Sequence record: NC_041917.1
DNA length: 64,000 nt
Direction: 5' to 3' (one strand)
A program made the position numbers and the translations under genes. This document shows positions 29,687 to 44,910 of this stretch, in pieces; positions within the stretch are counted from its first letter, which is position 1; each line of letters begins with the position of its first letter. The notes beneath the pieces are model-generated. The model saw nothing but the letters and a program-made list of their open reading frames with translations, was not told the origin of the DNA and did not search any database.

Positions 29687-30474
29687 TGCACTTTTTAATA
29701 ATGGACAAATACTTTAATGAAGAAGGATTCCGTGTAATGAAAGATTACATGGTACAACATAATATATCCCATACTTCAGTAAAACCTGTCCCTGTACTTA
29801 ATATATTCGTTCCTGAAGATGTTAATGATTATTCAGACGCTTCATATGAGAAGTATTTTGATAAATCTGTACCAACTATGTCATTTGGAAGCTATGCATT
29901 AGCTAATCAACTTATACAAGAAGGATATACTCCTGGTGGTTATATTAATGAGAACTTTAATATAAAAGTACAAATGGAACATTGGGGATTAGATAGTTTT
30001 CTTAATGGAATGGCTATTTTTGGGACGTTAGAAAATATGACTGCTCCTGATTGGAAACGTATTTTTATTCGTCCAGTACACGATACTAAACAAATGTTGG
30101 CTACCGTTATTGAAAAAGAAAACTTTGATTATTCTTTAGAACTATTTCGTTATGGTAAAGAACCAGGATTTGAAATTATGATCTCTGAATTTAAAGAAAT
30201 TAAAGCAGAGTTTCGTTTGTTTATTGTTCATGGTAAAGTTGTTGCACATTCATTATATAAGTTGAATGGTTCAGTTTGTATTGCATCATCTGTTCCTGAA
30301 GAAATAATTACAAAAGCAGAAGAACTATGTAATATTTGGACACCTGCTGATGCGTTCGTAATGGATTTTGCCGAAACTGTTGACGGATTTAAAGTACTCG
30401 AAGTTAATAACATAAACTGTGCTGGATTCTATGCATGTGATATTCCTTCAATTGTTGAGGCATTTATAAAATGA
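29686..30474 (+). CDS. ATP-grasp fold protein (DUF4343-like), paralog 2
   Basis: FIRP, EFRLFIV, VMDFA and VLEVNNINCAGFY motifs. Confidence 0.8.
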   Translation: MHFLIMDKYFNEEGFRVMKDYMVQHNISHTSVKPVPVLNIFVPEDVNDYSDASYEKYFDKSVPTMSFGSYALANQLIQEGYTPGGYINENFNIKVQMEHWGLDSFLNGMAIFGTLENMTAPDWKRIFIRPVHDTKQMLATVIEKENFDYSLELFRYGKEPGFEIMISEFKEIKAEFRLFIVHGKVVAHSLYKLNGSVCIASSVPEEIITKAEELCNIWTPADAFVMDFAETVDGFKVLEVNNINCAGFYACDIPSIVEAFIK

Positions 30475-30839
30475 AAAATCATTTGAACGAGTACTTTGAA
30501 GGATTAGATAATCTCATATTTGAATTTTATGAAACTATAAATCAAAATATTAGTTCAAAAACAATAACTATTCAGATGACTTTTTTATATAATAAGCATA
30601 TAAATTTTCATTATAATATTGAAAATGACGAATTAGTTATAGAAGATTTTGTTGATAAAATAAAATTAAAATATCCAAATTTCTCAAAACTTCAAGATGA
30701 AGCTTATCATTTTCAAAAAATGACAGTATGGCCTCATATTAGTTTTGAATGTACTGAAGTTGAGAAATTTATGATTGAAATTGAAAGGATTAAAAATGAA
30801 ACCAAATTTACCCCAAGAGCCAAATCCGAATTTGATTGA
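30471..30839 (+). CDS. hypothetical protein, EExxFQ paralog family
   Basis: QDEAYHFQKMT motif. Confidence 0.7.
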   Translation: MKNHLNEYFEGLDNLIFEFYETINQNISSKTITIQMTFLYNKHINFHYNIENDELVIEDFVDKIKLKYPNFSKLQDEAYHFQKMTVWPHISFECTEVEKFMIEIERIKNETKFTPRAKSEFD

Positions 30840-31032
30840 AAGTATGTGTATGCGTTTTGATCACTCACATGGTATTAGATCTCTACGTATGAAAGATGGT
30901 AAGTACGATGTTGAAACGGAAGAAGAATTTGAACGTAGGCGAGATTCGAATCGTAGAGTAATGCGGCAATTGTATGAAGAAGTATCTGGTTATGGATTTT
31001 ACCAATATCCAAAGGATAGTACTGATGAATGA
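30796..31032 (+). CDS. hypothetical protein
   Basis: SD AAGGA. Confidence 0.75.
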   Translation: MKPNLPQEPNPNLIESMCMRFDHSHGIRSLRMKDGKYDVETEEEFERRRDSNRRVMRQLYEEVSGYGFYQYPKDSTDE

Positions 31033-31456
31033 AATAGTAAGAAAACAACTTCATGATATAGCGAATAATGCACATTGCATTTATACTACCATAATCAGAG
31101 AACGAGTTAAGTATTCAAAATTTGGGTCAAAGGTTGGCATTCAGATTGATAATGCAATTCAATTTTCTAATACACCTGATAAATTTGAAATGTGGATTAA
31201 ATTTGGAAAACATACTATTATATATACTGATAACAGCGTAATATATCGTTATTGGGATAGTAAGAAGCCAGATAAACATATATATGATGTGATTGATTTA
31301 CCTGATATAAATAAATTTCAATTCACCGAGGAATATTATTTTCAGTACTCTACATTATTCAATTTCAAGTATTTAGAGTTAGAAGATCTTAAAGCACTTG
31401 ACACTATACGTAGAAAGGTACAAAACATTTGGAGTACACAATTACTATGTTGGTAA
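31025..31456 (+). CDS. hypothetical protein, EExxFQ paralog family
   Basis: FTEEYYFQYST motif. Confidence 0.75.
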   Translation: MNEIVRKQLHDIANNAHCIYTTIIRERVKYSKFGSKVGIQIDNAIQFSNTPDKFEMWIKFGKHTIIYTDNSVIYRYWDSKKPDKHIYDVIDLPDINKFQFTEEYYFQYSTLFNFKYLELEDLKALDTIRRKVQNIWSTQLLCW

Positions 31457-31632
31457 CACGTTATGAATTAATTGATGGGGAATTGATACCTCATGAATTT
31501 GGTGAATATGTAAAATTCACTGATTATAAAAAAGTGGAAGATGCCAGAAGTAAAGCAGTATCTGATGCTGGTTGGGCTGCTGATGCAGCACGTGAACAAG
31601 AAGAAATAAATCGTAATAGAGGATGGAATTAA
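31429..31632 (+). CDS. hypothetical protein
   Basis: ORF track; start uncertain. Confidence 0.65.
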   Translation: MEYTITMLVTRYELIDGELIPHEFGEYVKFTDYKKVEDARSKAVSDAGWAADAAREQEEINRNRGWN

Positions 31633-31862
31633 TGGCTATAAAAGCAAAACTTAATTTTTGTGATCTAGATTTAGATTATGCACGTACAGCATGGGATGGT
31701 GCATACATGGTACTAGCAGAAGTTAATGAAGTACTGAAAGAACGTGGAATTAAAATTGAATTTTTGTTAGAAGTTCATTCGGAAGAAGATTATCCTTCTA
31801 AGTTTTGGGATGAAGAAGATGTTGAATACACTACTAATACTACGGAAATTACTGACGAATGA
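31632..31862 (+). CDS. hypothetical protein
   Basis: TAATG coupling. Confidence 0.7.
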   Translation: MAIKAKLNFCDLDLDYARTAWDGAYMVLAEVNEVLKERGIKIEFLLEVHSEEDYPSKFWDEEDVEYTTNTTEITDE

Positions 31863-32365
31863 AAGATCCTAATCTCAATAATGAATTTATCGATTTTTTA
31901 GCAGATGAATTTCCAGAGGTATCGTTTAGTACTACATACGTACATTGGCACCCATCTGTAGGTGAGTACTGTGTATATATCAATGACACGTGGAGTGGTT
32001 ACGTTCCTGAAGAATATATATTTAAAGCCGGATTTGAGTATTATACTCTTTGGTCTAAGTATTGGGAAAAGTACCGTCAAACTGAAATTTTTATGGATTT
32101 AAATAGAAAATATGTTCAATCAATTTATAACATTCTTCAAGAAGAAAATACTACTGAATCTGATATTAGCCTTAATGTACGTATTCTTATGGACATTATA
32201 CGGAATCGCTCGTACCCTACAGATTATCAAAATTTTACCATAAAGATGATATTAGAAGTATTACAAAATAAAGGATACAATCAGTACACAGAAATGTTAG
32301 AAAACATTATTGGTGAAATAAATGACTTGGAAGAAAATAAACGAAGTCGTAGGAAGGTTTTATAA
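31859..32365 (+). CDS. hypothetical protein
   Basis: coupled ORF. Confidence 0.75.
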   Translation: MKDPNLNNEFIDFLADEFPEVSFSTTYVHWHPSVGEYCVYINDTWSGYVPEEYIFKAGFEYYTLWSKYWEKYRQTEIFMDLNRKYVQSIYNILQEENTTESDISLNVRILMDIIRNRSYPTDYQNFTIKMILEVLQNKGYNQYTEMLENIIGEINDLEENKRSRRKVL

Positions 32366-32768
32366 AAACTTTAGTACATTAAGAAAAACAGTTAATCGTG
32401 GAGATTATTGTTATTTTAAACTTAATGATTATTATGAGATTAAATGTGGTGATGATTATTTGGTTCAATTTAAGTATAAACCAAATAGTCAAGATTATTA
32501 TTATATGAATTATGATTATAATAATGATTCTGTTATGTTTTATACAACTAGAAAGTATTCTGGTTATTGGAAACATTCAGCACCTGATAATATCATAATA
32601 TTTAAGAACTTAACAAGGTTATGTACAGAGGAAGGACATTTTCAGGAAATGACCAGACAGGACTTGACAGATTTTGAAATTCCTGATATAATTTCCTTAT
32701 TGATGATGGGAAAAGCCATCGTTGACAAAACTAAGGAATATAGAAATGTCGGAACGTCCAGTACTTAA
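32322..32768 (+). CDS. hypothetical protein, EExxFQ paralog family
   Basis: CTEEGHFQEMT motif. Confidence 0.7.
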   Translation: MTWKKINEVVGRFYKNFSTLRKTVNRGDYCYFKLNDYYEIKCGDDYLVQFKYKPNSQDYYYMNYDYNNDSVMFYTTRKYSGYWKHSAPDNIIIFKNLTRLCTEEGHFQEMTRQDLTDFEIPDIISLLMMGKAIVDKTKEYRNVGTSST

Positions 32769-33177
32769 TTATAAATGTTACATTCTTCTTCGTGAAGATC
32801 TTGACATGCCGCAAGGTAAATTTGCTGTACAGGTAGGGCATGGTTTAGATCAAGTATGGCCTCTATATATGGACTACAAAGAACGTAGTCGTAAAGAGGA
32901 TAATGAAGATTTAATCATGCCTGTTTCTAACTTTGAAGGTTGGTATAAAGAAGGTCGTCGCAAGATAGTACTACGCCTTAAAAGCGAAGACCATATGAAC
33001 AAGATTAAAGAAAAAATTCAGGCTGAAATTGATTCTAATGAATATCATCCTGGATATTTTGTTCATGATATTTTTGATTATGGTTTTAACTTCTTTGATG
33101 GGTTAACACAAACTGGCCTTATCATTTATCCGAACCAAACAGAAATTGCAGCAGTAAAAAGACTACGATTGTGGTAA
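32746..33177 (+). CDS. peptidyl-tRNA hydrolase 2 (PTH2)-like protein
   Basis: YILLREDLDMPQGKFAVQVGHG, RKIVLR, D.G..T motifs. Confidence 0.8.
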   Translation: MSERPVLNYKCYILLREDLDMPQGKFAVQVGHGLDQVWPLYMDYKERSRKEDNEDLIMPVSNFEGWYKEGRRKIVLRLKSEDHMNKIKEKIQAEIDSNEYHPGYFVHDIFDYGFNFFDGLTQTGLIIYPNQTEIAAVKRLRLW

Positions 33178-33183
33178 AATAAA

Positions 33184-33212
33184 TGAAACAGAAATAAAAA
33201 TTGTGGTATAAT
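33184..33212 (+). promoter_or_regulatory. TGAAAC-class promoter
   Basis: TGAAAC-17-TATAAT before tRNA-Leu. Confidence 0.75.
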
Positions 33213-33226
33213 ATAAATATAATAAA

Positions 33227-33307
33227 GGGGATATGGTGGAATTGGTAGACACCGTGGTCTTAGAAGCCACCGCCTTGTGCGTGGGAGTTCGAGTCTCCCT
33301 ATCCCCA
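33227..33307 (+). tRNA. trnL: tRNA-Leu(TAG)
   Basis: class II cloverleaf, loop CT-TAG-AA. Confidence 0.92.
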
Positions 33308-33424
33308 CAAACGTAGATTCAGTAACCCGCTCTATGATGGTTTGAATCGTTCGAGTGCGTAGCACAGTAGAGCCATACGTGGCTCTCGCCCTTTTTGATT
33401 CATTTGGTAACATTCATTATTTGC

Positions 33425-33453
33425 TTGACAGTACCTCATCTTTGTGTGATAAT
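33425..33453 (+). promoter_or_regulatory. sigma70-type promoter
   Basis: TTGACA-17-GATAAT. Confidence 0.7.
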
Positions 33454-33509
33454 ATCTGTACAGGCGTTTAAGCTGCTAACGCAGCTTTTTTTATTTGTGG
33501 AGATTGACA

Positions 33510-33908
33510 ATGAAACGTGAAGCAATGAGCAGTACTAATTTGTATTGGTTTATATTCTTCTGGATCGCATTTACTTGTGTTAATATATACGTTGTTATGT
33601 ATAAACCAGAAGCGAACTGGAAAGAAAAAATCGAAACGCAAGTTAAAGCTGAATACAAAAAGAATGAACCAGCACCACCTGATGCAATGCGTCAAAACCA
33701 ACCAGCATATATCCAAATGCTAAACGATATTCAAAAATGTCCTAATGTTACTGACAAAGAAAATAATACTTTCTATACCTGTGAAAATGGTACTAAAGCT
33801 AGTATGATACATTGGACACGTGGTGACAAGAAAGGTGTAGTTACTCGTGAATATAATCCTGAAGGTAAATTAATCTTAATCTACGGACACCCTGATGATG
33901 TTTACTAA
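33510..33908 (+). CDS. membrane-anchored protein
   Basis: N-terminal TM helix. Confidence 0.8.
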   Translation: MKREAMSSTNLYWFIFFWIAFTCVNIYVVMYKPEANWKEKIETQVKAEYKKNEPAPPDAMRQNQPAYIQMLNDIQKCPNVTDKENNTFYTCENGTKASMIHWTRGDKKGVVTREYNPEGKLILIYGHPDDVY

Positions 33909-34143
33909 AATTGAAAATGCCGAAGTACTTGTTCGAACCAGTTCTGGACTAAAAGTACTACCCCTCTATACCCGCAATAGTAATAACCATGTATATGCTA
34001 AAAATGGTGCATACTATATTGCCCTAATGTCAACTAAACTAACAAGTAATCCTAAAATTACTTGGCAGGAAGTATCTATTCCTGAACAATTCGAAAAGAG
34101 CTACATGACTTATGCACAAACATGCAAAGAATCTGTCAGTTAA
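33898..34143 (+). CDS. hypothetical protein
   Basis: ORF track. Confidence 0.7.
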   Translation: MFTKIENAEVLVRTSSGLKVLPLYTRNSNNHVYAKNGAYYIALMSTKLTSNPKITWQEVSIPEQFEKSYMTYAQTCKESVS

Positions 34144-34345
34144 TGACATGGTTAAAGTAGCTAAAGATGAGTACTTGAAAGTTATTAAAATCGAGTACTT
34201 TGAATATTCTGTTCGCATTCAGGGATTCATTAACTATGGAACTGAATGTGAACAGCGTAGTTTTGGCTACTGTGATGTTGTATTCCTTAAAGCTGATGAA
34301 AAACCATCCAGCTTATTCTCAAGAATAATGAAGTACTTTACATGA
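34112..34345 (+). CDS. hypothetical protein
   Basis: ORF track. Confidence 0.65.
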   Translation: MHKHAKNLSVNDMVKVAKDEYLKVIKIEYFEYSVRIQGFINYGTECEQRSFGYCDVVFLKADEKPSSLFSRIMKYFT

Positions 34346-34513
34346 AAAATCCCGTATATTTAATGAGCACTCATAATGGTCGTACTTTTATGATGACTAG
34401 CTATGATCCAAAAACAATCGTTATCTTTGAAAATCCTGTAAAAGAGCTTGACAAAGATGGCAACGAACTGGTATTCTATACCACAATAGAAATTCGCAAG
34501 ATGTGAGAACAAA

Positions 34514-34768
34514 ATGACAAAAGTAGTCCGTAAGCGTCGAGTACTTGATAATGATGAATTCAAATCAAGGGAAATCCATCGCCAATTGTGGCGACGACTG
34601 TGTGCTGGTGAAAAGCAAATTGTTGTAACTGAAACAGTAGTTGAACCAGAAACTATTTTTGGGACGTACTTCAATGTATTCAATCATTTTATTAAAAAAG
34701 GATTACTTGAAGTAATTACTATTGATGAGTTAGATCCATCTGAACACGAATTCACTGTAATTAAATGA
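34514..34768 (+). CDS. hypothetical protein
   Basis: ORF track. Confidence 0.7.
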   Translation: MTKVVRKRRVLDNDEFKSREIHRQLWRRLCAGEKQIVVTETVVEPETIFGTYFNVFNHFIKKGLLEVITIDELDPSEHEFTVIK

Positions 34769-34776
34769 GGTGACAT

Positions 34777-35142
34777 ATGTCTTGGAACAACCGAGTAAGT
34801 ATTCATGAACATACTTACCAAGATGGTGAAAAAGAAAGTACTGCAACTGTGCATGAAGTATATTACACTGATGATGGTGTAATGTTCAGTGCTGCAATCG
34901 CTCCACAGGGTTCAGGTTCTAACAGTACTGAAGCACTTCAAGAATTGAAGTTAGAACTTCAGTTAATGCTTGAAGCAGTAGAATACGCACTTGATGGAAA
35001 AACTTCTATTTTTGATTATGATAACAAAGATACCCACGATGCGGGTGAACATTCTGAAATTATTCGTAAACGAAATGAAGTTAAAGTACTTGATCCTGAT
35101 GATGCGTATCTTGATGAAAAGTATGGTGATAATGATGACTGA
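34777..35142 (+). CDS. hypothetical protein
   Basis: SD GAGG; MSWNNRV..HEVYY phage motif. Confidence 0.8.
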   Translation: MSWNNRVSIHEHTYQDGEKESTATVHEVYYTDDGVMFSAAIAPQGSGSNSTEALQELKLELQLMLEAVEYALDGKTSIFDYDNKDTHDAGEHSEIIRKRNEVKVLDPDDAYLDEKYGDNDD

Positions 35143-35413
35143 TGCAGAGTTTTTAAAACAAGCTGAAGAAGATCTTTGGACTCAAGTTCAAAATCTTCGA
35201 AATCGAAGCAATGAAGCCCTTGAAGAAGGTGCTACATATCGCTTTGTTCTTTGTAATGCTAAAATCAGTTTTATTAATTCACTTTTACGTGATATTCAAT
35301 TCGCAAGGTCTGGACATGCACCTGACATTGTGGTAAAATCAACAATAGAAGCAGTGAAGCACGTTGAAGAAAATTTCAAGCCGTTTTTAGGCCAGTGCGG
35401 AACGTGTAATTGA
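35132..35413 (+). CDS. hypothetical protein
   Basis: start reassigned. Confidence 0.7.
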   Translation: MMTDAEFLKQAEEDLWTQVQNLRNRSNEALEEGATYRFVLCNAKISFINSLLRDIQFARSGHAPDIVVKSTIEAVKHVEENFKPFLGQCGTCN

Positions 35414-35426
35414 TTTGGAGGATAAC

Positions 35427-35951
35427 ATGGATCTCAACCGGATAGAAGTAATCAAAAAACTTAATGAACTAGCGTTGGTTTATCAAAAACAAGCACAGGA
35501 AGTTTTTTGTTTATTCGATTATAAATTTGAATTTGGGCTTTCAGTTCATTTCAAAGACCGTGTGATGCAGCGTTATCCTACATATGAAATTGCTGAAAAT
35601 CTTATTAAGCAAAATTTTGATTTGTTTTTCAAGAATCATACTCAATATATTTCACGAGCAATCACTGAAGTTGTTGATGTAAAGTTAGTTAATATTCGTC
35701 ATGATTCTTTGAATAAACAAAATGTCATCGTACTACAAATGTGTCGAATTGATGACATTATAAAAATAATTGGTATTACGATGTTTCAAAAAAATACATC
35801 ATATATCAAAAATAACCCAAATGAATTTGTACTATTACATAAACCAAAAAAATGGACTTCATTGGGAACAGTTGGTGAACGATTAAAACGATACGCCAAA
35901 AAACATGGCGTACCTGATGGGTTACAATGCTTAACCCAACCGTGGGGGTAA
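35427..35951 (+). CDS. hypothetical protein
   Basis: SD GGAGG. Confidence 0.8.
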   Translation: MDLNRIEVIKKLNELALVYQKQAQEVFCLFDYKFEFGLSVHFKDRVMQRYPTYEIAENLIKQNFDLFFKNHTQYISRAITEVVDVKLVNIRHDSLNKQNVIVLQMCRIDDIIKIIGITMFQKNTSYIKNNPNEFVLLHKPKKWTSLGTVGERLKRYAKKHGVPDGLQCLTQPWG

Positions 35952-35955
35952 TAAC

Positions 35956-36657
35956 ATGCATTCAGATATGAAAGCTGCATTAGATGCTGCGTTAGAAGAC
36001 ATTAAAAATATGTCATCTGATGACTTCTTTGCAAAATTGTATGGTTACAATTCAGAACAGTTGGAAGCCTATACTGAAGAAGTATTTTTAGTCGAGCTTC
36101 AGTACTTGAGAAGTTTCTTTGTAGATGGGGCATATTCTTTTGAACCAAGCTATGATAATCTTCCAGTACCAGAAATTACGAAGTTGTTTTGGAATTATAT
36201 TGAAAGAAATGCTCGTAGCACATATGAAGACACGTCTACATCATTTCCAACATATTACGTTGAATTGCCTAAGTATGGTATTCGTGTCACGCACATTTAT
36301 GGTCAAGGCACTGTTACCGTTGTAGAAGACTTTGATTATTCTGATCCCATGTATATTGTTAAGAACATTACACGTTTTAAGCGTGAAGCTGCATGGGAAC
36401 ATCAACGTAAAATTGATGAATTATTGTATGGAAAACCAAAACATTTAGATGAAGTACGTTTTAGTACTGAAGTTAATGGTATTGGTATTGTGGATACTGG
36501 TATCATTGAACGTGTGTACACCAAGAAAGGTGTAGTGCGATATTTGATTGATTCTGTTAATAACGGTAAAGTACTAGTATTCTACGATCAGGGTGAAAAA
36601 TATCCAATGGATGCAGTAGAAATAATTGAACTTCATCCAAACAACTACGATAGGTAA
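35956..36657 (+). CDS. hypothetical protein
   Basis: ORF track. Confidence 0.8.
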   Translation: MHSDMKAALDAALEDIKNMSSDDFFAKLYGYNSEQLEAYTEEVFLVELQYLRSFFVDGAYSFEPSYDNLPVPEITKLFWNYIERNARSTYEDTSTSFPTYYVELPKYGIRVTHIYGQGTVTVVEDFDYSDPMYIVKNITRFKREAAWEHQRKIDELLYGKPKHLDEVRFSTEVNGIGIVDTGIIERVYTKKGVVRYLIDSVNNGKVLVFYDQGEKYPMDAVEIIELHPNNYDR

Positions 36658-36663
36658 TATATC

Positions 36664-37005
36664 ATGGAAATTGATTATAAGCTGGTGCGTGAGTTAACTC
36701 ATGATTTGGAAATGAACGGTCGTCAATTTATTGCACGTGATCGTTTAATTCAGCAAATGAAAGCTGATGGAACTTATGATGTTAAGCACGGTCAGGATTT
36801 AATTTATTTCCATGTAGTAAGTGGAATGATTAATTCCATTATTGAAAAGATCTTTATGTACTTAGAATATAAAACTGTAAATGAAGGTCTTGAAAGTGCA
36901 TTTCGTGGTTTAGTGGAAAAAGAGTACAACGAATATAAAGAATATTATAACCATTGTGATTTTTTATCTGCAATGGATAGAAAGTACGGATTGAATCTAT
37001 TATGA
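36664..37005 (+). CDS. hypothetical protein
   Basis: ORF track. Confidence 0.75.
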   Translation: MEIDYKLVRELTHDLEMNGRQFIARDRLIQQMKADGTYDVKHGQDLIYFHVVSGMINSIIEKIFMYLEYKTVNEGLESAFRGLVEKEYNEYKEYYNHCDFLSAMDRKYGLNLL

Positions 37006-37199
37006 ATATTGAACAAAAACTTACACCTAAGTATTGGGCTGCACATGATTCCCGTACTGATGATGTTATTTTAAGTACCTTGTTTAAGTACAAGCAAGAT
37101 ACATATGATGAATTAGTGAAGTTGTATGGTGAAGATTGGGAAGATACACATCCTAATTTGACTATTGACTTAATTGAACTGAAGTTAGTTCAACTGTAA
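37002..37199 (+). CDS. hypothetical protein
   Basis: coupled ORF. Confidence 0.7.
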   Translation: MNIEQKLTPKYWAAHDSRTDDVILSTLFKYKQDTYDELVKLYGEDWEDTHPNLTIDLIELKLVQL

Positions 37200-37210
37200 C
37201 AGAATACTGA

Positions 37211-37460
37211 CCGTTGTTGGGATGTTGGCTTAGAGGCAGCAATCATATAATGAGTGTCGAGAACGATCCGTAATTGGTAAACGTACCACAATGACCAATC
37301 GTATAAGTTCAGGGGAAGAAAAGACCGGATACAGTTATGTTAGTACGGTATGCACGGGCGGCGTATACTTAATACAGGAAAGGTAGGTGGTACTACTTTG
37401 TACTGATAAATGCTAACATAGACCCTTAGAGACTTTGGCGTAATAGCACACCATCAACGG
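37211..37460 (+). ncRNA. ncRNA containing a split mimic of the 23S rRNA L11-binding (H43-H44) domain
   Basis: GGATGTTGGCTTAGAGGCAGCAATCATATAATGAGT ...182 nt... GCGTAATAGCACAC, closed by CCGTTG/CAACGG. Confidence 0.75.
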
Positions 37461-37492
37461 CTTTTTAATTAAAATAATATATGGTATAACCT

Positions 37493-37825
37493 ATGACTAT
37501 TAAAGTTAACGGTACTGTAACTGAAGTAAAATCAGTTGAAGTTGATATTAGCATAGTTGAACTCGAAAAAGCGGCAAATCAGTTGACAAACGGACAACTT
37601 CTTATTATATTAAAACGGAAGTTGGTTCAACAATTAATTTCAAAAGATCCTGCACTACAAGGTGCAGAACTTTCATGGCATGGTACATGTTGGGAAGTTT
37701 TTGATTACTATGATTATCATCATCGTGAAGATAAGTACAAAAAACTTCGTGATTTAAATGATGAAGAAAAGTACGCACTATCCACATTCAACGATGTATT
37801 TGAACTATTCAGGAAATTACAATGA
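37493..37825 (+). CDS. hypothetical protein
   Basis: ORF track. Confidence 0.75.
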   Translation: MTIKVNGTVTEVKSVEVDISIVELEKAANQLTNGQLLIILKRKLVQQLISKDPALQGAELSWHGTCWEVFDYYDYHHREDKYKKLRDLNDEEKYALSTFNDVFELFRKLQ

Positions 37826-38079
37826 CAGTACAAAAATTTGAAAAGTTACCTATCCAGATTGATGCCCTTGAATGGACTGGTAATAATCTTAAAGAGTTAA
37901 AAGCCTTTGCGAGTCCAAAAGAAGTAAAGATTAATAATATGGGTCATTGCAAAATTGAAACTTTAGAAGGCTGGTTAACTGCATCGATTGGTGATATGAT
38001 CATCAAAGGTGTACAAGGGGAAATTTACCCATGCAAACCTGATGTGTTTGCACTAACGTATCGTAAAATTGAGGAATAA
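37822..38079 (+). CDS. widespread conserved phage protein of unknown function
   Basis: IETLEG..GD.IIKGV.GE.YPCKPD.F..TY motif. Confidence 0.85.
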   Translation: MTVQKFEKLPIQIDALEWTGNNLKELKAFASPKEVKINNMGHCKIETLEGWLTASIGDMIIKGVQGEIYPCKPDVFALTYRKIEE

Positions 38080-38082
38080 AAA

Positions 38083-38421
38083 ATGACGCACTAGAATGAT
38101 AAAACTTGGATCTATGTATTTGTTCGTACTGATTTACCAATCGAACAAGTTGTAGTACAATCAAACCACGCCGCTTATGAAAGCGGATTAGCATTCGAAA
38201 ATAACAGTACTGAGACTAGTTCTCTAATCGTTATCTCGTGTAAGAATAAACATAAGTTACAAAAAGCATATGATGAACTCCAAGCTGAGGGTATTGATTT
38301 AATTCAATTCCATGAACCAGATTGGGATTATGGTTTAACTGCATTTGCCAGTGCTCCAGTAACCGCTGAACAGCGTAGTATCTTCCGTAAGTTTCAACTT
38401 TTTCGTGGAGGTGCTAAATGA
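38083..38421 (+). CDS. PTH2-like protein with in-frame TAG at codon 4 (readthrough candidate; missed by ORF track)
   Basis: SD GAGG + ATG-ACG-CAC-TAG, then 108 open codons with YVFVRTDLP..Q..VQ..HAA and FHEPD..LTA motifs. Confidence 0.75.
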
Positions 38422-38984
38422 TTTATCCTAACACTTTCGAAGAATTGCTACAAGTAATGCAAAAAACTGAGCAAATGAAAGGTCTTAGTGTTCATGCACA
38501 TGGACTTATGGTTGTTGAACAGTATAAAGTACTAATTTCAGAACTTGACACTGGATAGGGCGACCCTATATTACTTGAGGTATATGGTAAAATTAAAGAT
38601 AAGATTTTATCAGATGATATTGTATTACGTTACCAAGAGTTTCATGATTGTGGTAAACCAATATGTCGTGTAGTTGATGATGAGGGTAAAGTTCATTTCC
38701 CTGAACATGCTAATATCAGTGCAGATGTTTGGAGTAAGCTATTTCCAAATGAAAATGTCATTCAAGAGTTGATGCGAAAAGATATGACTTTCCATGTTGC
38801 AAAATCTGATGATTTTGATACAATATGGCAAGATCCTTTAGCACCTACTTTGTATGTAACTGCATGGGCTGAGATTTTAGCGAACTGTACAATGTTTGGT
38901 GGTCAGGATAGCACTTCTTTTAAAATTAAAAAGAAGAAGCTAATTCAAGCAGGTAAAAAGTACTTAAACTCTTTACCTAAATAA
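38418..38984 (+). CDS. HD-domain phosphohydrolase with in-frame TAG at codon 47 (readthrough candidate)
   Basis: SD GGAGG, ATGA coupling; one TAG at 38556-58, then HDCGKP..F.EHA motif in the same frame. Confidence 0.75.
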
Positions 38985-39026
38985 TTTTAAGGCGGCTACG
39001 GTCGCCTGTTTTAAGAGGTTTCCATT

Positions 39027-39488
39027 ATGGAAAGTAAAAATACTGAAAATGTAATGACTGTTGAAATTTTCAAAGGAGCCACGCAAGAAACTATTTTTGT
39101 GTGTCGTTCACAAGGACAGTACTTTGCACCTGACCAAACGTATGATATTCATGAACATGAATACATCAAACGCTACGATACACATTTTTATCATAAAATT
39201 GATGAAAAGAATTGTCGAGAAAGTCATCGTGAAATCATGTTTGGTAAAGATGGAAAACCTGGATATATCTTTAGTTTAGCTAAAGGTTTATCAAAATCAT
39301 ATAATTTAGGTGAACTTGACAGTATTGTATTCACTTTTAGTGGATATGGTGACTGTACGGGTGAAACCTTTATTGTTAGTACTCTAGACTATGCAGAAAA
39401 GGAAGAATTTCAGCAAATTGTCGATGACAAGGAATTACTCTTTAGTAAGTTTAAAGAAGCATTCCCTGAACATGAATTAAATTTATAA
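39027..39488 (+). CDS. hypothetical protein
   Basis: SD GAGG. Confidence 0.8.
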   Translation: MESKNTENVMTVEIFKGATQETIFVCRSQGQYFAPDQTYDIHEHEYIKRYDTHFYHKIDEKNCRESHREIMFGKDGKPGYIFSLAKGLSKSYNLGELDSIVFTFSGYGDCTGETFIVSTLDYAEKEEFQQIVDDKELLFSKFKEAFPEHELNL

Positions 39489-39497
39489 GGATGTATT

Positions 39498-39689
39498 ATG
39501 ATTACTACTGAAAATGTAACGCTATACGATACCCTAAATGAATCATATGGTTCTCCGTATGGCTTAGGATATAAGGGATATATCTTTGTGTTCGAAACTG
39601 TTGCTGAACGTGATTCTTGGATAAATGAATGCACCGACGAAGACTTAGATTATATCATTGAAAATGAAAGTGTAGAAACCGAGGATTAA
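39498..39689 (+). CDS. hypothetical protein
   Basis: SD AAGGA. Confidence 0.7.
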   Translation: MITTENVTLYDTLNESYGSPYGLGYKGYIFVFETVAERDSWINECTDEDLDYIIENESVETED

Positions 39690-39693
39690 AACT

Positions 39694-40044
39694 ATGGGTT
39701 CGAATGTAGAAGCTTCAATTAATGTAAAACTTGTAAAACAACCACGTGGTATGAAAGGTGCTAAACCTGATATTGAACAAATTCATACTGATTTGTGTTC
39801 TATTGTTGAAAATGAAACGTTTTCTATTCATAGTAATACTAATATTGTGGCTGAACCAGAATGTCGTTGGAGTGAAATAGATTCTGATATGAAAAAATTA
39901 TCAGTACTATATCCTGGAATTTTATTCACGGTTAAAGTTGTTATTCCAGACTATGAAGTAAATGAACTACATTACTTCTATGAAGGTAAAACTCACGAAG
40001 CTGTGATCACATTCTCACCATTCGATGAAGCACTTTTGAAATAA
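39694..40044 (+). CDS. hypothetical protein
   Basis: SD GAGG. Confidence 0.8.
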   Translation: MGSNVEASINVKLVKQPRGMKGAKPDIEQIHTDLCSIVENETFSIHSNTNIVAEPECRWSEIDSDMKKLSVLYPGILFTVKVVIPDYEVNELHYFYEGKTHEAVITFSPFDEALLK

Positions 40045-40062
40045 ATAAAGTACCACAAAAAA

Positions 40063-40091
40063 TGAAACAATATTATTTTTTGTGGTATAAT
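40063..40091 (+). promoter_or_regulatory. TGAAAC-class promoter
   Basis: TGAAAC-17-TATAAT before tRNA-Arg. Confidence 0.75.
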
Positions 40092-40100
40092 ATTAGTATT

Positions 40101-40172
40101 CTCCTGTTAGCTCAATGGATAGAGCAGTAGCCTTCTAAGCTATAGATATAGGTTCGATTCCTATACGGGAGA
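40101..40172 (+). tRNA. trnR: tRNA-Arg(TCT)
   Basis: cloverleaf, loop CT-TCT-AA. Confidence 0.92.
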
Positions 40173-40214
40173 CAAAACAAATACGCCTAAGCATATGCTT
40201 GGGCTTTTTTATGG

Positions 40215-40625
40215 GTGGATATTGTGGAAGAACAAACCTTTCCAGAAGAAATATTTAAAGCTCTAGAAGATATATATGTAAAATATATTATACCTAATGG
40301 TAAAGTTGATAAATTTCTATCATGGGCTGATTTAGAAGATAGAGATTTAACAGATTGTGGGTTTGAATTACATCCAGACTATGAAAATAAATATGAAAAT
40401 TCTCACCATATTTGTTTGTATGGAACAATTGGAACTACTTATATAAGTGATAATAATTTAACCTTCTTCTATCATGGTGGAGGACAACCACCTTCAGTAC
40501 TTGACAATTACACTGAACTTACTGAAGAACGTCATTTCCAATTAGGGACAACCACCTTTCTTGCTGGTGTATTTGAATTACAAGATTTTCAAAAGATCCA
40601 CAATTATTTCAATAAGATTATGTAA
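40215..40625 (+). CDS. hypothetical protein, EExxFQ paralog family
   Basis: LTEERHFQLGT motif; GTG start. Confidence 0.7.
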   Translation: MDIVEEQTFPEEIFKALEDIYVKYIIPNGKVDKFLSWADLEDRDLTDCGFELHPDYENKYENSHHICLYGTIGTTYISDNNLTFFYHGGGQPPSVLDNYTELTEERHFQLGTTTFLAGVFELQDFQKIHNYFNKIM

Positions 40626-40626
40626 C

Positions 40627-41076
40627 ATGAAAACTGTATTAGTATTTGACTATCACTTTATTGAACATGTAGAATATCCAGGTGGACCTGGTTGTTTAGG
40701 TACAGTAAAGTGGAATGAAATTGTAGAAGCTAATTTTACTACCTTCGAATTACAAGACAATGGTTTATATTTGTCATGGAGATTGGAGCGGGAAGATGAT
40801 GGTCATTATATAGAAATTCCAAGATATATATCATTTGATGAGATTGGTAAAGAACAGTACAGAATGTACAAAGAAGTCATAGAGAATGAATCATATTGGT
40901 TCGAAGATATTTCTATAGAAAGAGATTTTCTTTTATCGCAACTGTGCTATAATGAGTTGAACACCGTACAAAACCGTGCGTGGATTGAGTACTGGATTTT
41001 ATATCAACATACTGAATGGACAAATGAATATGAAGAAAAACGAGCCAGAAAAGCCGCTGAAGCGTTCAACACGTAA
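40627..41076 (+). CDS. hypothetical protein
   Basis: start reassigned to ATG 40627. Confidence 0.75.
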   Translation: MKTVLVFDYHFIEHVEYPGGPGCLGTVKWNEIVEANFTTFELQDNGLYLSWRLEREDDGHYIEIPRYISFDEIGKEQYRMYKEVIENESYWFEDISIERDFLLSQLCYNELNTVQNRAWIEYWILYQHTEWTNEYEEKRARKAAEAFNT

Positions 41077-41309
41077 TCCTTTACCGTGGCTTCAGCAATG
41101 GTTAAAAACGCCACAGATGCCTGTCAGTGAGCTTCCTGAAGTTCAAAAAAAGTGTAAAAAGGGGCTTGACAATGAATCCGAGTAAGTGTAAAGTACATAC
41201 ATCGATGAGCGACGAAACTAAAGCTCGATTGAAAGAAATGATTAATCCGAAAAGTAATGTTGTATTTGTAAACTTCAATTGTAAGTAATGGTAATTCAGG
41301 AGAATCAGA

Positions 41310-41579
41310 ATGAAGATGTTGAATTTACCTAGTACTGTAAAATGTAATGTCAATGGCTGTGAGCTTGAAGTTCCTCGTGGTATTCATTACATTGTAATTA
41401 ATTACACTGGACATATTGACGCATATGAAACTAAACCATATTTGCGTGAAGGTATGTGGGTAAATGATGGTGAAGTAGGCATTTACCTTGGACATGCGAA
41501 ACTTGAAGATAATGATGAATGGACACATCCATTCCTTGTTGATAAAAACCGTTTTAGTACATATAGTGATTGTGATTAA
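41310..41579 (+). CDS. hypothetical protein
   Basis: SD AGGAG. Confidence 0.75.
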   Translation: MKMLNLPSTVKCNVNGCELEVPRGIHYIVINYTGHIDAYETKPYLREGMWVNDGEVGIYLGHAKLEDNDEWTHPFLVDKNRFSTYSDCD

Positions 41580-41615
41580 TTTTTGTTCAAGTCGTTGAAA
41601 TTTTTGAGAAAAAGA

Positions 41616-41644
41616 TGGAACGACTTAAAAAAGTCTGGTATAAT
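41616..41644 (+). promoter_or_regulatory. TGAAAC-class promoter (TGGAAC variant)
   Basis: TGGAAC-17-TATAAT before the suppressor tRNA. Confidence 0.7.
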
Positions 41645-41665
41645 ATACGTATTGAAACAACATAT

Positions 41666-41741
41666 GCCTTTGTAGCTCAGTTGGTAGAGCGGGAATCTCT
41701 AAAATTCTTTGTCGTCGGTTCGAGTCCGACCATCGGCACCA
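41666..41741 (+). tRNA. amber suppressor tRNA (anticodon CTA)
   Basis: stem GGAAT/ATTCT, loop CT-CTA-AA, canonical D and T arms, encoded CCA; two acceptor-stem mismatches. Confidence 0.85.
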
Positions 41742-41743
41742 AT

Positions 41744-41852
41744 GCACAAATGATGGAATTGGTAAACATAACGTCCAACAATAGCTAATGCGACGATAGG
41801 AGGTGGGAAGTACCGCGAGGTTTCCTTATAGGTTCGAAGCCTATTTTGTGCA
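41744..41852 (+). tRNA. atypical class II tRNA-like RNA with enlarged anticodon loop
   Basis: GCACAAA/TTTGTGC acceptor, Leu-type D loop, long variable arm, about 22-nt anticodon loop. Confidence 0.6.
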
Positions 41853-41873
41853 CTTTTAATTGAGGGACATAAT

Positions 41874-42071
41874 ATGTCTAAATGTGAAAGTTGTAACGGC
41901 ACTGGATACCATTATGCAGGTGACGGAATGGTATATGATTGTACTCCATGTAATAGTACAGGAAGTCAACGTACAGTAAGCACAGAAACTTTCGAAAAAT
42001 TACAAGAAGAAATTCAAAAACCTTCTATGCCTACACTTATGTTACGAAAGTTAATGCGGCGGTTGAAGTAA
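41874..42071 (+). CDS. small Zn-finger (CxxCxGxG) protein
   Basis: CESCNGTG..CTPCNSTG. Confidence 0.75.
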   Translation: MSKCESCNGTGYHYAGDGMVYDCTPCNSTGSQRTVSTETFEKLQEEIQKPSMPTLMLRKLMRRLK

Positions 42072-42081
42072 AAACAAATTC

Positions 42082-42156
42082 GGCCCTTTAGCTCAGTGGT
42101 AGAGCAGGCGACTCATAATCGCTTGGTCGTTGGATCGTTCCCAACAAGGGCCACCA
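42082..42156 (+). tRNA. tRNA(CAT), Ile2 (lysidine)-type by resemblance to enterobacterial ileX
   Basis: GGCCCTT acceptor, GGCGA-CTCATAA-TCGCT arm, CCA; non-canonical T loop. Confidence 0.85.
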
Positions 42157-42495
42157 TACACGCTACCTGATTAGTAGCTAGGAGAATTGCTATCTTCGAA
42201 TGTAGCCAGTTGATCTTGGTAAAATAAGCTCTAATATGAGAGTACTCATATCTCGACGTGGCGAGAATGGGATGGGGCTGGAGAGGAAACTCTGAGAAGG
42301 TCACGACCCCCGACCATTAACTATTAAGTGAGGTTTCATATGTGGAAATACATTAAGACCAATTTACATATAATTTTATTTGCAATTCTGGCTTTGATAG
42401 TACTTGGTATCGTCACTAATGCAATTGCAGATGGTATCGGGCGTATTGTTACTCAGCAGATGATTAATGATACCTATCTAATTCACAGGTGATTT

Positions 42496-42705
42496 ATGAC
42501 AATTGCAGAAATACAAAAACAGCTTGCAAATTCTTTTCAAAACGGTTATTATATTCGTCGTCCACATTTTATCGCGTTAAACGTTGAGTTATACTTGGAT
42601 AAGAATAACAACTTGTTCGAAATTGATACTCAAGAGGGTCGTGTGGTTGAAGTTAATTTCACACGAGTAGAAAGTACTGTCACTGATTGGGAAATAATTT
42701 TATGA
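42496..42705 (+). CDS. hypothetical protein
   Basis: ORF track. Confidence 0.7.
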   Translation: MTIAEIQKQLANSFQNGYYIRRPHFIALNVELYLDKNNNLFEIDTQEGRVVEVNFTRVESTVTDWEIIL

Positions 42706-42884
42706 GTCCTTCTGTAATCCGTATGATTTTTTCTGGTTCTTTGGGTATTATTGCAGCGGTTATTCATCCATATATTACTGCTGGTCATATTAGTAGCTTG
42801 ATGTTAACTATTATCTTCATTACTATTATGGCAGGTGGTGAAGCTTTGGGAGCATACGCCGCTTCTTTGAAGAAAAGGACATAA
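42702..42884 (+). CDS. small membrane protein
   Basis: hydrophobic; ATGA coupling. Confidence 0.7.
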   Translation: MSPSVIRMIFSGSLGIIAAVIHPYITAGHISSLMLTIIFITIMAGGEALGAYAASLKKRT

Positions 42885-42888
42885 AATA

Positions 42889-43080
42889 ATGATTTTGACC
42901 TTTATTTTTCTTTGGAGTCTGTTAAACTCTATTTCTGGTTGGGTGATGGCAACAAAAGCTGTCTTAATAGGAGATTATAGTACATTTTCCTATCGGGTGG
43001 GGAACTCATTACTATTCACTATTGTTTGTATTGATGCATTTCTCCGAATCTTTTCAGTTACACAAACAGGCTTGTGGTAA
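42889..43080 (+). CDS. small membrane protein
   Basis: hydrophobic ORF. Confidence 0.65.
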   Translation: MILTFIFLWSLLNSISGWVMATKAVLIGDYSTFSYRVGNSLLFTIVCIDAFLRIFSVTQTGLW

Positions 43081-43520
43081 TGAAACTATTAACTACTTCT
43101 GATTTTAAAACACAACACCTTGCAAAAATGTGTGTTGAATCACATCTATTTCATTCATATGCATGGACACTGTTTCAATGCTTTACTGATGTAATGGATG
43201 ATGAAGATATTGCAAATACATCTGAGATTATGATTCTACAAGATGATTCTGGTAAGAATATTGGTACTATCTTCCACAATCATGAATATGAATCCAATTA
43301 TTGGGGTACTAATATTCAGGTGTTTGTTATTGAATCTGAACGTGGAAAAGGTTATGGCAAATTGCTGTACAAAGAAATGAACAAACTTCTTATTCAAAAG
43401 AAATTTGATGGAACACTTTATGCTGGTTCAGGTATTCAGGGTTCGATGGATTTTTGGGGTAAGATGGCTGAATTACATGAAAGTGACGAATGTCTGACTT
43501 TACAGGCTGAGTACTTTTAA
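43080..43520 (+). CDS. GNAT-family acetyltransferase-like protein
   Basis: VFVIESERGKGYGKLL acetyl-CoA motif. Confidence 0.75.
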   Translation: MKLLTTSDFKTQHLAKMCVESHLFHSYAWTLFQCFTDVMDDEDIANTSEIMILQDDSGKNIGTIFHNHEYESNYWGTNIQVFVIESERGKGYGKLLYKEMNKLLIQKKFDGTLYAGSGIQGSMDFWGKMAELHESDECLTLQAEYF

Positions 43521-43528
43521 TATATAAT

Positions 43529-43617
43529 GCGGGTGTGGCGGTATTGGCAGTACGCACAGGACTTAAAATCCTGTAGGGGTTTCCCCCTTGTGAGTTCGAA
43601 TCTCATCACCCGTACCA
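43529..43617 (+). tRNA. trnL: tRNA-Leu(TAA)
   Basis: class II, CAGGA-CTTAAAA-TCCTG, CCA. Confidence 0.92.
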
Positions 43618-43650
43618 AATAACATTTCGAAGTAGTCTTTAGGAGACACT

Positions 43651-43962
43651 ATGAAAAAGATTTTTGTAGTACCAAATGGTGAAAGCTATTTTGGTGTTAG
43701 TATGGTAGCACTCACAGAAGATGGTGATTGTATCGCTGGTCATCTAAGTAGCAATACTACGTGGGGTCGCCATGATATGGGCATTGGTTCAGATTGGAAG
43801 CACGATCTTTATGATAAAGAATATGGTGCTGGACAATGGGAACTATTGTATGCTGACGATGAAGTTATGGATTCAGAAGAATTCAAACTTGCAGTACAGC
43901 GTAATCATGAAAAAGGTGAAGCTGCTGAACAGGAAGAAACTGAAGATGAAGAAACTGAATAA
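43651..43962 (+). CDS. hypothetical protein
   Basis: SD AGGAG. Confidence 0.8.
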   Translation: MKKIFVVPNGESYFGVSMVALTEDGDCIAGHLSSNTTWGRHDMGIGSDWKHDLYDKEYGAGQWELLYADDEVMDSEEFKLAVQRNHEKGEAAEQEETEDEETE

Positions 43963-44179
43963 GTTAATTCTAGGAGCGATACTGTTAAGTACTTTCACGG
44001 TACAAGCAGACGCTCCACGCCCAGCACGTTATCATGCAGAATGTTCAAAACCTATAGGTGTCTTTGACGAAGACATTTATGATTATAGTGAATATTCTTA
44101 TGGTAGCTATAAAATTACACCACTTGTGGGTAAAAAAATATTATTCACAAATTCTTTTTGTGTATTCACTGAATACTAA
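43946..44179 (+). CDS. secreted protein
   Basis: signal peptide MKKLNKLILGAILLSTFTVQA. Confidence 0.7.
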   Translation: MKKLNKLILGAILLSTFTVQADAPRPARYHAECSKPIGVFDEDIYDYSEYSYGSYKITPLVGKKILFTNSFCVFTEY

Positions 44180-44188
44180 GGTAAAAAT

Positions 44189-44422
44189 ATGAAGATTATC
44201 GAAGATGCAGTACTGGCTAAAATGAACCTTAAACGTCTGAAATCGCATCGTACTTCAGTACTGGCAAGTATTAACAAAGAGTTTTTTGATTATACCAAAG
44301 ATGATGACCAAATTCGTTTTCCAGTAAATCATGATACGAAAGAATATGCTGATGCAATCGCGTATCGTAATAAAGTAAACAAATATTATGATGCTGCACG
44401 TTCAGCAGTAAAGGTGAAATAA
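44189..44422 (+). CDS. hypothetical protein
   Basis: ORF track. Confidence 0.75.
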   Translation: MKIIEDAVLAKMNLKRLKSHRTSVLASINKEFFDYTKDDDQIRFPVNHDTKEYADAIAYRNKVNKYYDAARSAVKVK

Positions 44423-44679
44423 TGTCTGGAACATTTACAATTGTGCCACGGTACTGTATTGAAAGTGGTGAAGTTAGTGGTGTTGGTGAAATGATTGGAC
44501 TAGATTGGAATGATGTATGTGATCTTGTATCTCGTGCTGGTCTTTATGGTGAAGATGGTGCAGGTTACACTACTGTTCAAAAAGGTCAGACCTTTGGAAA
44601 CGATTTAGATCTTATTTTCACTAAGATTTTTGAAGATAATCCATCTGCTGATGAAATCTATATTCTTGATGATTTCTAA
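44422..44679 (+). CDS. hypothetical protein
   Basis: TAATG coupling. Confidence 0.75.
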   Translation: MSGTFTIVPRYCIESGEVSGVGEMIGLDWNDVCDLVSRAGLYGEDGAGYTTVQKGQTFGNDLDLIFTKIFEDNPSADEIYILDDF

Positions 44680-44690
44680 AAGGTAAATCT

Positions 44691-44909: not shown

Positions 44910-44910
44910 T

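Follow-up and report, generated by a model that had tools for sequence, protein, structure and literature searches.

The isolated 58-nt domain of 23S rRNA that makes up the GTPase-associated centre (GAC) is a high-affinity ligand of uL11. In the published model, the contact surface of the L11 C-terminal domain comprises 1058–1060, 1062–1065, 1075–1083, and 1088, and A1067 together with A1095–1098 forms the side of thiostrepton and the N-terminal domain. Within the rRNA, a base triple joins C1072 of the H43 loop to the C1092–G1099 pair of H44; it is stacked on the G1071.(G1091–C1100) triple, and this arrangement docks H43 on H44.

Regulation by rRNA mimics in mRNA leaders is known; the L10 leader, for one, imitates the uL10 stalk-base site with a K-turn. 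Phages, for their part, are known to carry tRNAs, tmRNA, and a few exchangeable ribosomal proteins, and the tRNA cluster of phage T4 includes two stable RNAs, species 1 and 2, to which no function is assigned. GOLLD and ROOL are structured RNAs used by phages that often adjoin tRNA genes, and co-transcription has been suggested for them. Here, we describe, using pattern and covariance-model searches complemented with covariation analysis, what appears to be a phage RNA of a new kind, which reproduces an internal domain of rRNA, probably acts in trans, and has a function that we infer from its conservation. Rfam 15 holds no family for this RNA, and none is described in the literature that we searched, which comprised freely accessible papers, among them two large catalogues of motifs. 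The RNA suggests an undescribed viral route to tamper with, or to shield, host protein synthesis.

A split copy of the GAC in phage BF

The window, that is, the whole 64,000-nucleotide stretch of DNA that was analysed, derives from the Serratia jumbo phage BF (KY630187, 357 kb); its positions 30000–45000 correspond to 278000–293000 of that record with 100% identity. The element is an intergenic segment of about 250 nt on the plus strand, housed in a 293-nt gap between two plus-strand ORFs (37002–37199 and 37493–37825), and its parts are listed in Table 1. Two rRNA-like strings, GGATGTTGGCTTAGAGGCAGCAATCATATAATGAGT and GCGTAATAGCACAC, are confirmed in the sequence where the sequence-only reading had placed them, exactly 182 nt apart and enclosed by CCGTTGTTG and CATCAACGG. 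The enclosing strands pair over nine positions with one U–U mismatch, and the pair G37220–C37451 adds to this closing helix, P1, which we call a 10-bp helix. A37232 is the equivalent of A1067 in E. coli 23S numbering and A37442 that of A1095, while U37255–A37448 corresponds to the 1090–1101 pair and is the compensatory U–A pair that had already been noticed in H44. A genuine 23S stretch (L068) reads AAAGAGTGCGTAATAGCTCAC unbroken, which confirms the register of the two BF halves. Each of the two rRNA consensus strings used for searching, a 26-mer and a 14-mer, has a single match in the window (with 2 mismatches and 1 mismatch, respectively), and 0 matches are expected for either one in 100 dinucleotide shuffles.

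The claim that no other rRNA surrounds the element also holds. The Rfam model LSU_rRNA_bacteria (RF02541) scores 13.3 bits at 37219–37269 (model positions 1095–1146) and does not reach its gathering score of 50, and the Rfam scan and ORF check of the flanks found no other rRNA-like sequence. Over 37100–37560, gathering and permissive scans with Rfam 15 returned nothing beyond this weak LSU match and a spurious match to a eukaryotic scaRNA, and the models of GOLLD, ROOL, HEARO, group I and II introns, tmRNA, and tRNA have no match in the same interval. A covariance model made from the core sequences of the class with a placeholder loop finds the BF 5′ half with 35.6 bits (E 2e-6); it is unable to span the long BF insert, and its search of the window returned no second copy.

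Two further candidates within the element were set aside. A sarcin-ricin-loop-like string, GAAAAGACCGGAUAC (37317–37331), is not conserved in Yersinia phage fHe-Yen9-04 or Xanthomonas phage XaC1, nor did the LSU model locate another rRNA-like segment. A protein-coding reading would have to use the sole internal ORF (37291–37386, 31 aa), which overlies covarying helices and indel-variable regions.

Table 1. Parts of the GAC-like element of phage BF, in window coordinates
Feature	Coordinates	Strand	Remarks
Whole element, GAC-mimic RNA with type-A insert	37211..37460	+	Full-length type-A alignment, 14 sequences
P1, 5′ strand, in the topological place of H42; pairs with 37452–37460	37211..37219	+	
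rRNA-like 5′ half, 23S 1055–1090: H43 stem-loop, 1082–1086 turn, H44 lower 5′ strand GAGU (GGATGTTGGCTTAGAGGCAGCAATCATATAATGAGT)	37220..37255	+	
Insert helix Pins, 5′ strand GUC (37256–37258; pairs with GAC 37431–37433), then G-A of tandem G.A/A.G	37256..37260	+	A37260 invariant in the type-A alignment
Arm Pa: helix 37261–37264/37307–37310 and inner hairpin 37274–37277/37295–37298	37261..37310	+	4/4 pairs compensatory in each helix
GGGG; GGG 37312–37314 would pair with CCC 37423–37425 as C-stem of the K-turn-like three-way junction	37312..37315	+	Invariant in 14/14 type-A sequences, hence no covariation signal
Distal insert domain with long 10-bp helix Pb (37335–37344/37412–37421)	37316..37422	+	8/10 Pb pairs compensatory; interior differs in length among relatives
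CCC-UUA-GA-GAC: bulged strand of the K-turn-like motif and Pins 3′ strand	37423..37433	+	CCCTTAGA invariant in the type-A alignment
UUUG linker, between insert and G1091	37434..37437	+	
rRNA-like 3′ half, 23S 1091–1104: H44 top hairpin GCGUAAUAGC, then A1101 C1102 A1103 C1104 (GCGTAATAGCACAC)	37438..37451	+	
P1, 3′ strand	37452..37460	+	
U-run block TTTTTAATTAA right after P1; possible 3′ end signal	37462..37472	+	Kept in the BF family (alignment of relatives)

Distribution, shared design, and genomic setting

The element is carried by eight phages that are nearly identical to each other, among them a second record of Serratia phage BF and six phages of Erwinia, and diverged copies with 73–85% identity are present in Cronobacter phage GAP32, Pectobacterium phage CBB, Erwinia phage Kaldavass, Xanthomonas phages XbC2 and XaC1, and Yersinia phage fHe-Yen9-04. 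In an alignment of these relatives, the closing helix shows compensatory substitutions, and the insert blocks TATAAGYTCAGGG and CCCTTAGAGA are nearly invariant. The same is true of both rRNA-like halves, so that their conservation, on which the idea of a selected mimic hinged, is seen at this level of overall identity.

The half-motifs recur in a large class of viral sequences. A degenerate pattern for the 5′ half occurs in 59 viral contigs, and in 59 of 59 the sequence after GAGT is not that of rRNA. The 3′ half, always G-Y-G-U-N-N-N-A-R-C-A-C-A-C, lies 27–357 nt downstream of the 5′ half, and directly after it comes the complement of the sequence that precedes the 5′ half. An 18-mer from the 3′ side (TTTGGCGTANNAGCACAC) alone occurs in at least 120 viral contigs; among the 18-mer matches listed, an H43 half is recognisable upstream in 94 of 101 new loci, and four of the seven loci that lack it had less than 70 nt of upstream sequence. 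Altogether, the class comprises at least 131 distinct elements in 89 clusters, a cluster being a group that is not alignable to other groups over 70% of its length, and the cores are 77–419 nt long (median 190). An ordinary 23S fragment matched in Paenibacillus phage Pd_22F and short “phage” records annotated as 23S are rRNA and were not included as class members.

Cultured carriers are phages of Serratia, Erwinia, Cronobacter, Pectobacterium, Yersinia, Xanthomonas, Pseudomonas, and Aeromonas (further examples are Xanthomonas phage XacN1, Aeromonas phage 4_4572, and Pseudomonas phages pf16, UNO-G1W1, Astolliot, and Milchi, the last with two tandem copies), and many uncultured viral contigs add to these. 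When 596 Gb of prokaryotic genomes were searched with a strict 19-base pattern, 17 matches resulted, of which about 12 are real; MAG contigs account for nearly all of the real ones and the scaffold of an isolate for one, and most of them come with dense phage-like tRNA arrays. Since the same pattern is matched by at least 35 viral loci of the collection, we regard the class as phage-borne, and it is essentially confined to phage-like DNA. It is abundant and it is ancient, with one design common to very different phages.

This design follows a fixed order: P1, H43, the 1082–1086 turn, G1087-A-G-U1090, Pins with a variable domain, UUUG, the H44 top hairpin, A1101-C-A-C1104, and the 3′ strand of P1. 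The extra helix sits exactly between 1090 and 1091 in every member, and no unsplit copy was found among the class members; interrupted here by 23 nt or more of insert followed by UUUG, the H44 strand 1087–1102 is continuous in none of them. Position 1101, which is U in rRNA, is A in 116 of 118 members and pairs with U1090. The linker, counted in sequences retrieved without constraint there, reads U (46/46), U (45/46), U (46/46), and G (42/46). BF itself differs from enterobacterial 23S at 1089/1090, and at 1101 it differs from both rRNA types. Taken together with the common insertion point, linker, and A1101, these differences argue for a single origin of the class and not for recent captures from hosts. 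The obligatory insert and the change of U1101 to A further indicate that selection is not for identity with the ribosomal site.

The inserts range from 23 to 365 nt, the smallest being hairpins of 23–25 nt (L028 and L081), and there are several architectures, including type A (CAGGGGAAG...CCCUUAGAG), type C (CACCCCG...GGUAAGGCUGAA), and others. Only the GAC core and the near-invariant UUUG are common to all 89 clusters. Type-A lineages that are otherwise unalignable have a K-turn-like motif in common, in which the 1b.1n pair has an invariant G and A, the NC-stem covaries, and the C-stem does not change. The arrangement of CCC-UUA-GA-GAC opposite GUC-GA-(Pa)-A-GGG resembles, in its sequence pattern, a K-turn extended to a three-way junction. 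That the 182-nt insertion of BF is structured, as previously thought, is borne out by the covarying helices Pins, Pa, and Pb in the type-A alignment.

A tRNA gene is found at most 100 nt from 64 of the 131 elements, and in 64 of 64 cases on the same strand. The distance from the end of the upstream tRNA to G1055 has a lower quartile of 13 nt, which means that P1 begins almost at the tRNA 3′ end; a downstream tRNA often follows within 12–17 nt, and a tmRNA gene is also present at eight element loci. In Pseudomonas phage pf16, for instance, tRNA-Asn and tRNA-Pro flank the element. Such a context is consistent with joint transcription with tRNAs followed by release through tRNA-processing enzymes, a route also suggested for GOLLD and ROOL. 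The BF copy is atypical, as its nearest tRNA genes are 4 kb away and its neighbours are small same-strand ORFs; the window has about 20 tRNA genes, all on the plus strand. Our scan detected no convincing sigma-70 promoter or canonical terminator near the BF copy, and the U-run was not called by the consensus terminator scan. The proteins that flank the element belong only to PHROG families of no assigned function and have no Pfam match. Neither membership of a large class nor the usual home inside phage tRNA arrays figured in the sequence-only reading.

Tertiary fold and conserved surface

We scored the shared helices in an alignment of 110 distinct core sequences in which the variable interior is replaced by a 4-nt placeholder. 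At the proposed pairs, 87.7% of the cells are paired (66.7% when shuffled), and both partners have changed in a compensatory manner in 23 of the 29 pairs. The alignment has a covariation score of 0.534, against 0.146 for shuffled alignments (0/500), and sliding the partners by 1–3 columns lowers it to 0.10–0.18. P1 has changes on both sides in 10 of 11 pairs among the 110 class members and in 9 of 10 pairs in the type-A set; H43 is 97.4% paired, with covariation in five of seven pairs, and H44 is 100% paired. The 1058/1080 pair is seen as U–A, G–C, A–U, and C–G, the 1082/1086 pair as U–A (69), C–G (32), and A–U (13), and Pins covaries across the class as GUC/GAC, AUC/GAU, UUC/GAA, UGC/GCA, CUC/GAG, and GCC/GGC. 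When a hand-built structure of the whole RNA is scored on the 14 type-A sequences aligned at full length, 92.5% of cells are paired, 30 of 46 pairs are compensatory, and the covariation score is 0.493 versus 0.143 shuffled (0/500). Thermodynamic folding performs no better than for shuffled sequence (z of −0.67 for the whole element and −0.36 for the insert), and RNAalifold assigns wrong pairs within the GAC core, which is not surprising for a domain with tertiary structure.

The bases that dock H43 on H44 change in concert. At 1072/1092/1099, the phage RNAs have C/C/G in 108 cases, U/U/A in 8, and U/U/G in 2, with 0 discordant combinations, and the 46 sequences retrieved without constraint at these positions divide into 36, 8, and 2, respectively. 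The switch is seen in at least seven clusters and splits the BF family itself: BF, GAP32, CBB, Kaldavass, and XbC2 have C/C/G, and L010, L011, and fHe-Yen9-04 have U/U/A. G1071, G1091, C1100, U1060, and A1088 are invariant or at least 99% conserved (A1088 is fixed by the retrieval filter). Such a concerted change indicates that selection keeps H43 docked on H44, and hence the GAC tertiary fold, and we firmly predict from these patterns that the phage RNAs adopt this fold. Selection would thus act on the tertiary fold of one of biology's best-studied RNA–protein sites, and the class offers a natural experiment on how a three-way junction in H44 is accommodated by the GAC fold. The proposal of a selected GAC mimic is strongly supported by the conservation in diverged relatives, the helix covariation, the concerted base triple, and the wide distribution in phages.

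Which side of the fold is under constraint can be read from position counts, for which we used sequences retrieved only through the opposite half (G1087, A1088, and U1090 are fixed by the filter). G1055, G1059, U1060, G1063, C1075, C1079, A1084, A1085, G1089, G1093, U1094, and A1098 are invariant. The listed contacts of the L11 C-terminal domain are invariant, more than 80% conserved, or covarying as pairs, and the insertion point at 1090/1091 falls outside the listed uL11 surface. Position 1067 is A in 58 of 72 sequences (81%) and G in 10, and positions 1068–1070 vary; in H44, position 1095 is A in 43 of 46 (93%), 1096 is A in 37 of 46, and 1097 is U, C, or A. The view that both loops are kept is correct for BF, which has both A1067 and A1095, and is weakened for the class, where A1067 is at 81% and 1096/1097 vary. 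At the level of sequence, the fold and the predicted surface for the uL11 C-terminal domain are kept, and the factor and antibiotic side is relaxed. Because the bases for factors and thiostrepton are less constrained, recognition of uL11 or of the fold is favoured over mimicry of the factor loops.

Possible activities and comparison with known systems

What could such an RNA do in the infected cell? The retained uL11 surface, the position of the insert outside of it, and the tight binding of L11 by the isolated rRNA domain make binding of host uL11 by a stable RNA the most likely activity, to which we assign a probability of roughly 0.5. The element would then be a gene for a stable non-coding RNA, about 250 nt long in BF, that folds as a free-standing GAC with H43 and H44 docked by base triples, with a closing helix in place of H42, and with a lineage-specific extra domain branching from H44 between 1090 and 1091. 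In most phages, the RNA would be transcribed with tRNA genes and excised by tRNA-processing enzymes, and it may bind host uL11, possibly along with further stalk proteins, off the ribosome and so act as a sponge. A sponge of this kind would be expected to alter uL11-dependent steps in infection, namely RelA activation, RF1-dependent termination, and the control of factor GTPases. uL11 is required for RelA activation. It is also required for RF1-dependent termination, and a sponge could blunt the stringent response or favour UAG read-through. If this holds true, the infected cell would be “relaxed”, with no RelA activation, and would have weaker RF1-dependent UAG termination, which would favour the amber-suppressor tRNAs of BF and at least 12 other element loci. 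A tRNA with a CUA anticodon is encoded in BF at 41666–41741, and such tRNAs occur in 13 of the 116 element loci with tRNAs, a count that is only a lead, as it comes from a short stretch around each element and has no control set.

Some considerations speak against a sponge. The extra helix and UUUG join H44 beside the H43–H44 docking site and could alter or block the access of protein. The departures from the ribosomal site (insert and A1101), the promoter and terminator scan of the BF copy, and the folding energies weigh on the same side. uL11 is abundant and mostly on ribosomes, so a sponge would need a high copy number. A phage protein or another GAC ligand could equally read the conserved surface. 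A broader and more tentative suggestion, which we hold to be possible though not probable, is that phages use a portable copy of a ribosomal centre either as a weapon, the uL11 sponge, or as a shield, a decoy for undiscovered immune effectors that attack the GAC; either version, if true, would be the first trans-acting mimic of an rRNA domain in virus–host conflict.

Taken by itself, the decoy, in which surplus target sites soak up an agent directed at the GAC, be it a toxin or an immune effector such as an ADP-ribosyltransferase of rRNA or an RNase, and spare the ribosomes on which the phage depends, seems unlikely to us. It draws on the finding in the cited literature that the toxin Tre23 ADP-ribosylates 1095–1098 of H44 in naked or ribosomal 23S rRNA. 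In our unbiased set, G1093, U1094, and A1098 are invariant and A1095 is at 93%; however, 1096/1097 vary within the Tre23 target window, as does A1067 outside of it, and the obligatory insert together with A1101 makes the site differ from the target. The restriction of the class to phages and the position of the element among phage tRNA genes would suit a decoy, and it is a widespread view that phage tRNAs stand in for, or outcompete, those host tRNAs that are hit by defence nucleases. Nonetheless, no conserved partner gene is present in the neighbourhood, and no anti-phage defence aimed at the GAC was found in the literature searched. To our knowledge, none is known.

It is also doubtful, and slightly more so, that the GAC fold, with or without uL11, merely serves as a rigid, nuclease-resistant support on which the lineage-specific insert is the working part. 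The inserts of 23–365 nt do come in several conserved architectures, and those of type A contain covarying helices and invariant blocks in their own right. However, L028 and L081 have a mere hairpin of 23–25 nt as insert, and nothing besides the GAC core with UUUG recurs in all 89 clusters; that a single invariant core bears unrelated inserts speaks for a shared function located in the core.

Direct binding of EF-G, EF-Tu–tRNA, IF2, RF3, or RelA by mimicry of their docking site is improbable. The GAC is where these factors dock in the ribosome, according to the cited literature, and BF retains A1067 and A1095, but across the class the contact bases (A1067, 1068–1070, and 1096/1097) are the least conserved part of the core, and the LSU model detects no second rRNA-like segment. 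In addition, factors normally depend on the sarcin-ricin loop and bL12 to bind.

Finally, a functionless cis leader, processing spacer, or decaying piece of captured host rRNA can be dismissed as very improbable: the BF copy does lie upstream of an ORF and phage records do include contaminating rRNA pieces, but the relatives have different downstream genes, tRNA genes are the neighbours on both sides in most phages, the compensatory covariation is massive, the class-specific design is absent from any rRNA, and the differences from rRNA at 1089/1090 and 1101 exclude a recent capture from the host.

If uL11 binding or shielding of the GTPase centre proves true, the RNA would represent a new layer of translation takeover or counter-defence, and may point to unknown defence systems aimed at the stalk base. 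Existing reagents suit the hypothesis of uL11 binding, including uL11, thiostrepton, 58-mer controls, and the classic triple mutants. The class would also provide a new family for annotating phage tRNA arrays.

Among the known systems, the 58-nt L11-binding domain of 23S rRNA (H43–H44 and the end of H42, nt 1051–1108) has the same helices as the phage RNA. Bacillus-type rRNA agrees with the class consensus at 49 of 50 core positions and with BF at 45 of 50, and the likeness includes the 1082–1086 turn, the U1060–A1088 pair, and the 1071 and 1072 base triples, of which the latter covaries in concert. In contrast to the rRNA domain, the phage RNA is standalone and phage-encoded, its H44 is split by a helix or domain plus UUUG, it has A at 1101, its closing helix is free to vary, and A1067 and 1096/1097 are not invariant.

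Similar to the phage RNA, the leaders of r-protein mRNAs are non-ribosomal copies of an rRNA protein site, and type-A phage members resemble the L10 leader in that they carry a K-turn-like motif beside the GAC copy. The leaders, however, are cis-acting 5′ UTRs of bacterial r-protein operons that imitate local features only and not a whole tertiary domain, whereas the phage element resides in tRNA arrays or between unrelated phage ORFs. Rfam leader families such as L10_leader have no match to it at E values up to 10, and its neighbours are tRNA genes or phage ORFs of no assigned function. GOLLD and ROOL are without sequence or structural relation to the phage GAC RNA and do not mimic rRNA. Phage tRNAs and tmRNA share the neighbourhood and strand of the GAC RNA and presumably its route of transcription and processing. 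These RNAs, however, copy free cellular RNAs, whereas the GAC RNA copies an internal rRNA domain that is never free in the cell.

A candidate second insertion site and tandem elements

In nine members of the class from viral contigs (L133, L163, L113, L155, L103, L136, L132, L162 and L079), H43 of the 23S rRNA-like core is kept through GCAGCCA and then diverges before the junction, which suggests a second permitted insertion site near 1077/1078 (E. coli numbering). In Pseudomonas phage Milchi (L071), two elements stand in tandem (~1160-1480 and 1501-1660), directly followed by a tRNA-Met; their insert types differ, and the H43 junction of the upstream copy is shortened and diverged.

Separately, an ordinary bacterial 23S rRNA stretch, unannotated, is present at 82.5-85.5 kb in the record of Paenibacillus phage Pd_22F (L068, GenBank MZ092003). 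This stretch is either assembly carry-over or host DNA within the genome.

Genes neighbouring the element

The 2'-5' RNA ligase is an enzyme of the RNA-repair type. In Xanthomonas phage XacN1 (L070), the element starts (1501 onward) 22 nt past a gene annotated as such a ligase (828-1478). Eight element-bearing loci (L027, L062, L066, L100, L116, L123, L156 and L175) carry a tmRNA within the element's own tRNA array. Serratia phage BF encodes a tRNA with a CUA anticodon 4.2 kb downstream from its element, and CUA tRNAs also occur in 12 further element-bearing loci, a count that covers element-bearing loci only.

Unusual tRNA calls in the BF window

Two of the tRNA calls in the window were made by Rfam and missed by ARAGORN. 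The higher-scoring one carries ~49 additional nt in its anticodon arm, a hairpin among them, and may represent a tRNA gene with an intron or a disrupted one. The weaker match has an odd anticodon arm, with normal-looking acceptor, D and T arms.

tRNA features in the BF window
Feature	Position	Strand	Remarks
tRNA, CUA anticodon	41666-41741	+	amber-suppressor type; ARAGORN label tRNA-Pyl
tRNA	48567-48688	+	Rfam, 48.6 bits
tRNA, weak match	54006-54078	+	Rfam, 36.4 bits
tRNA-Pro (UGG), tandem pair	62225-62301, 62311-62383	+	spacing 9 nt
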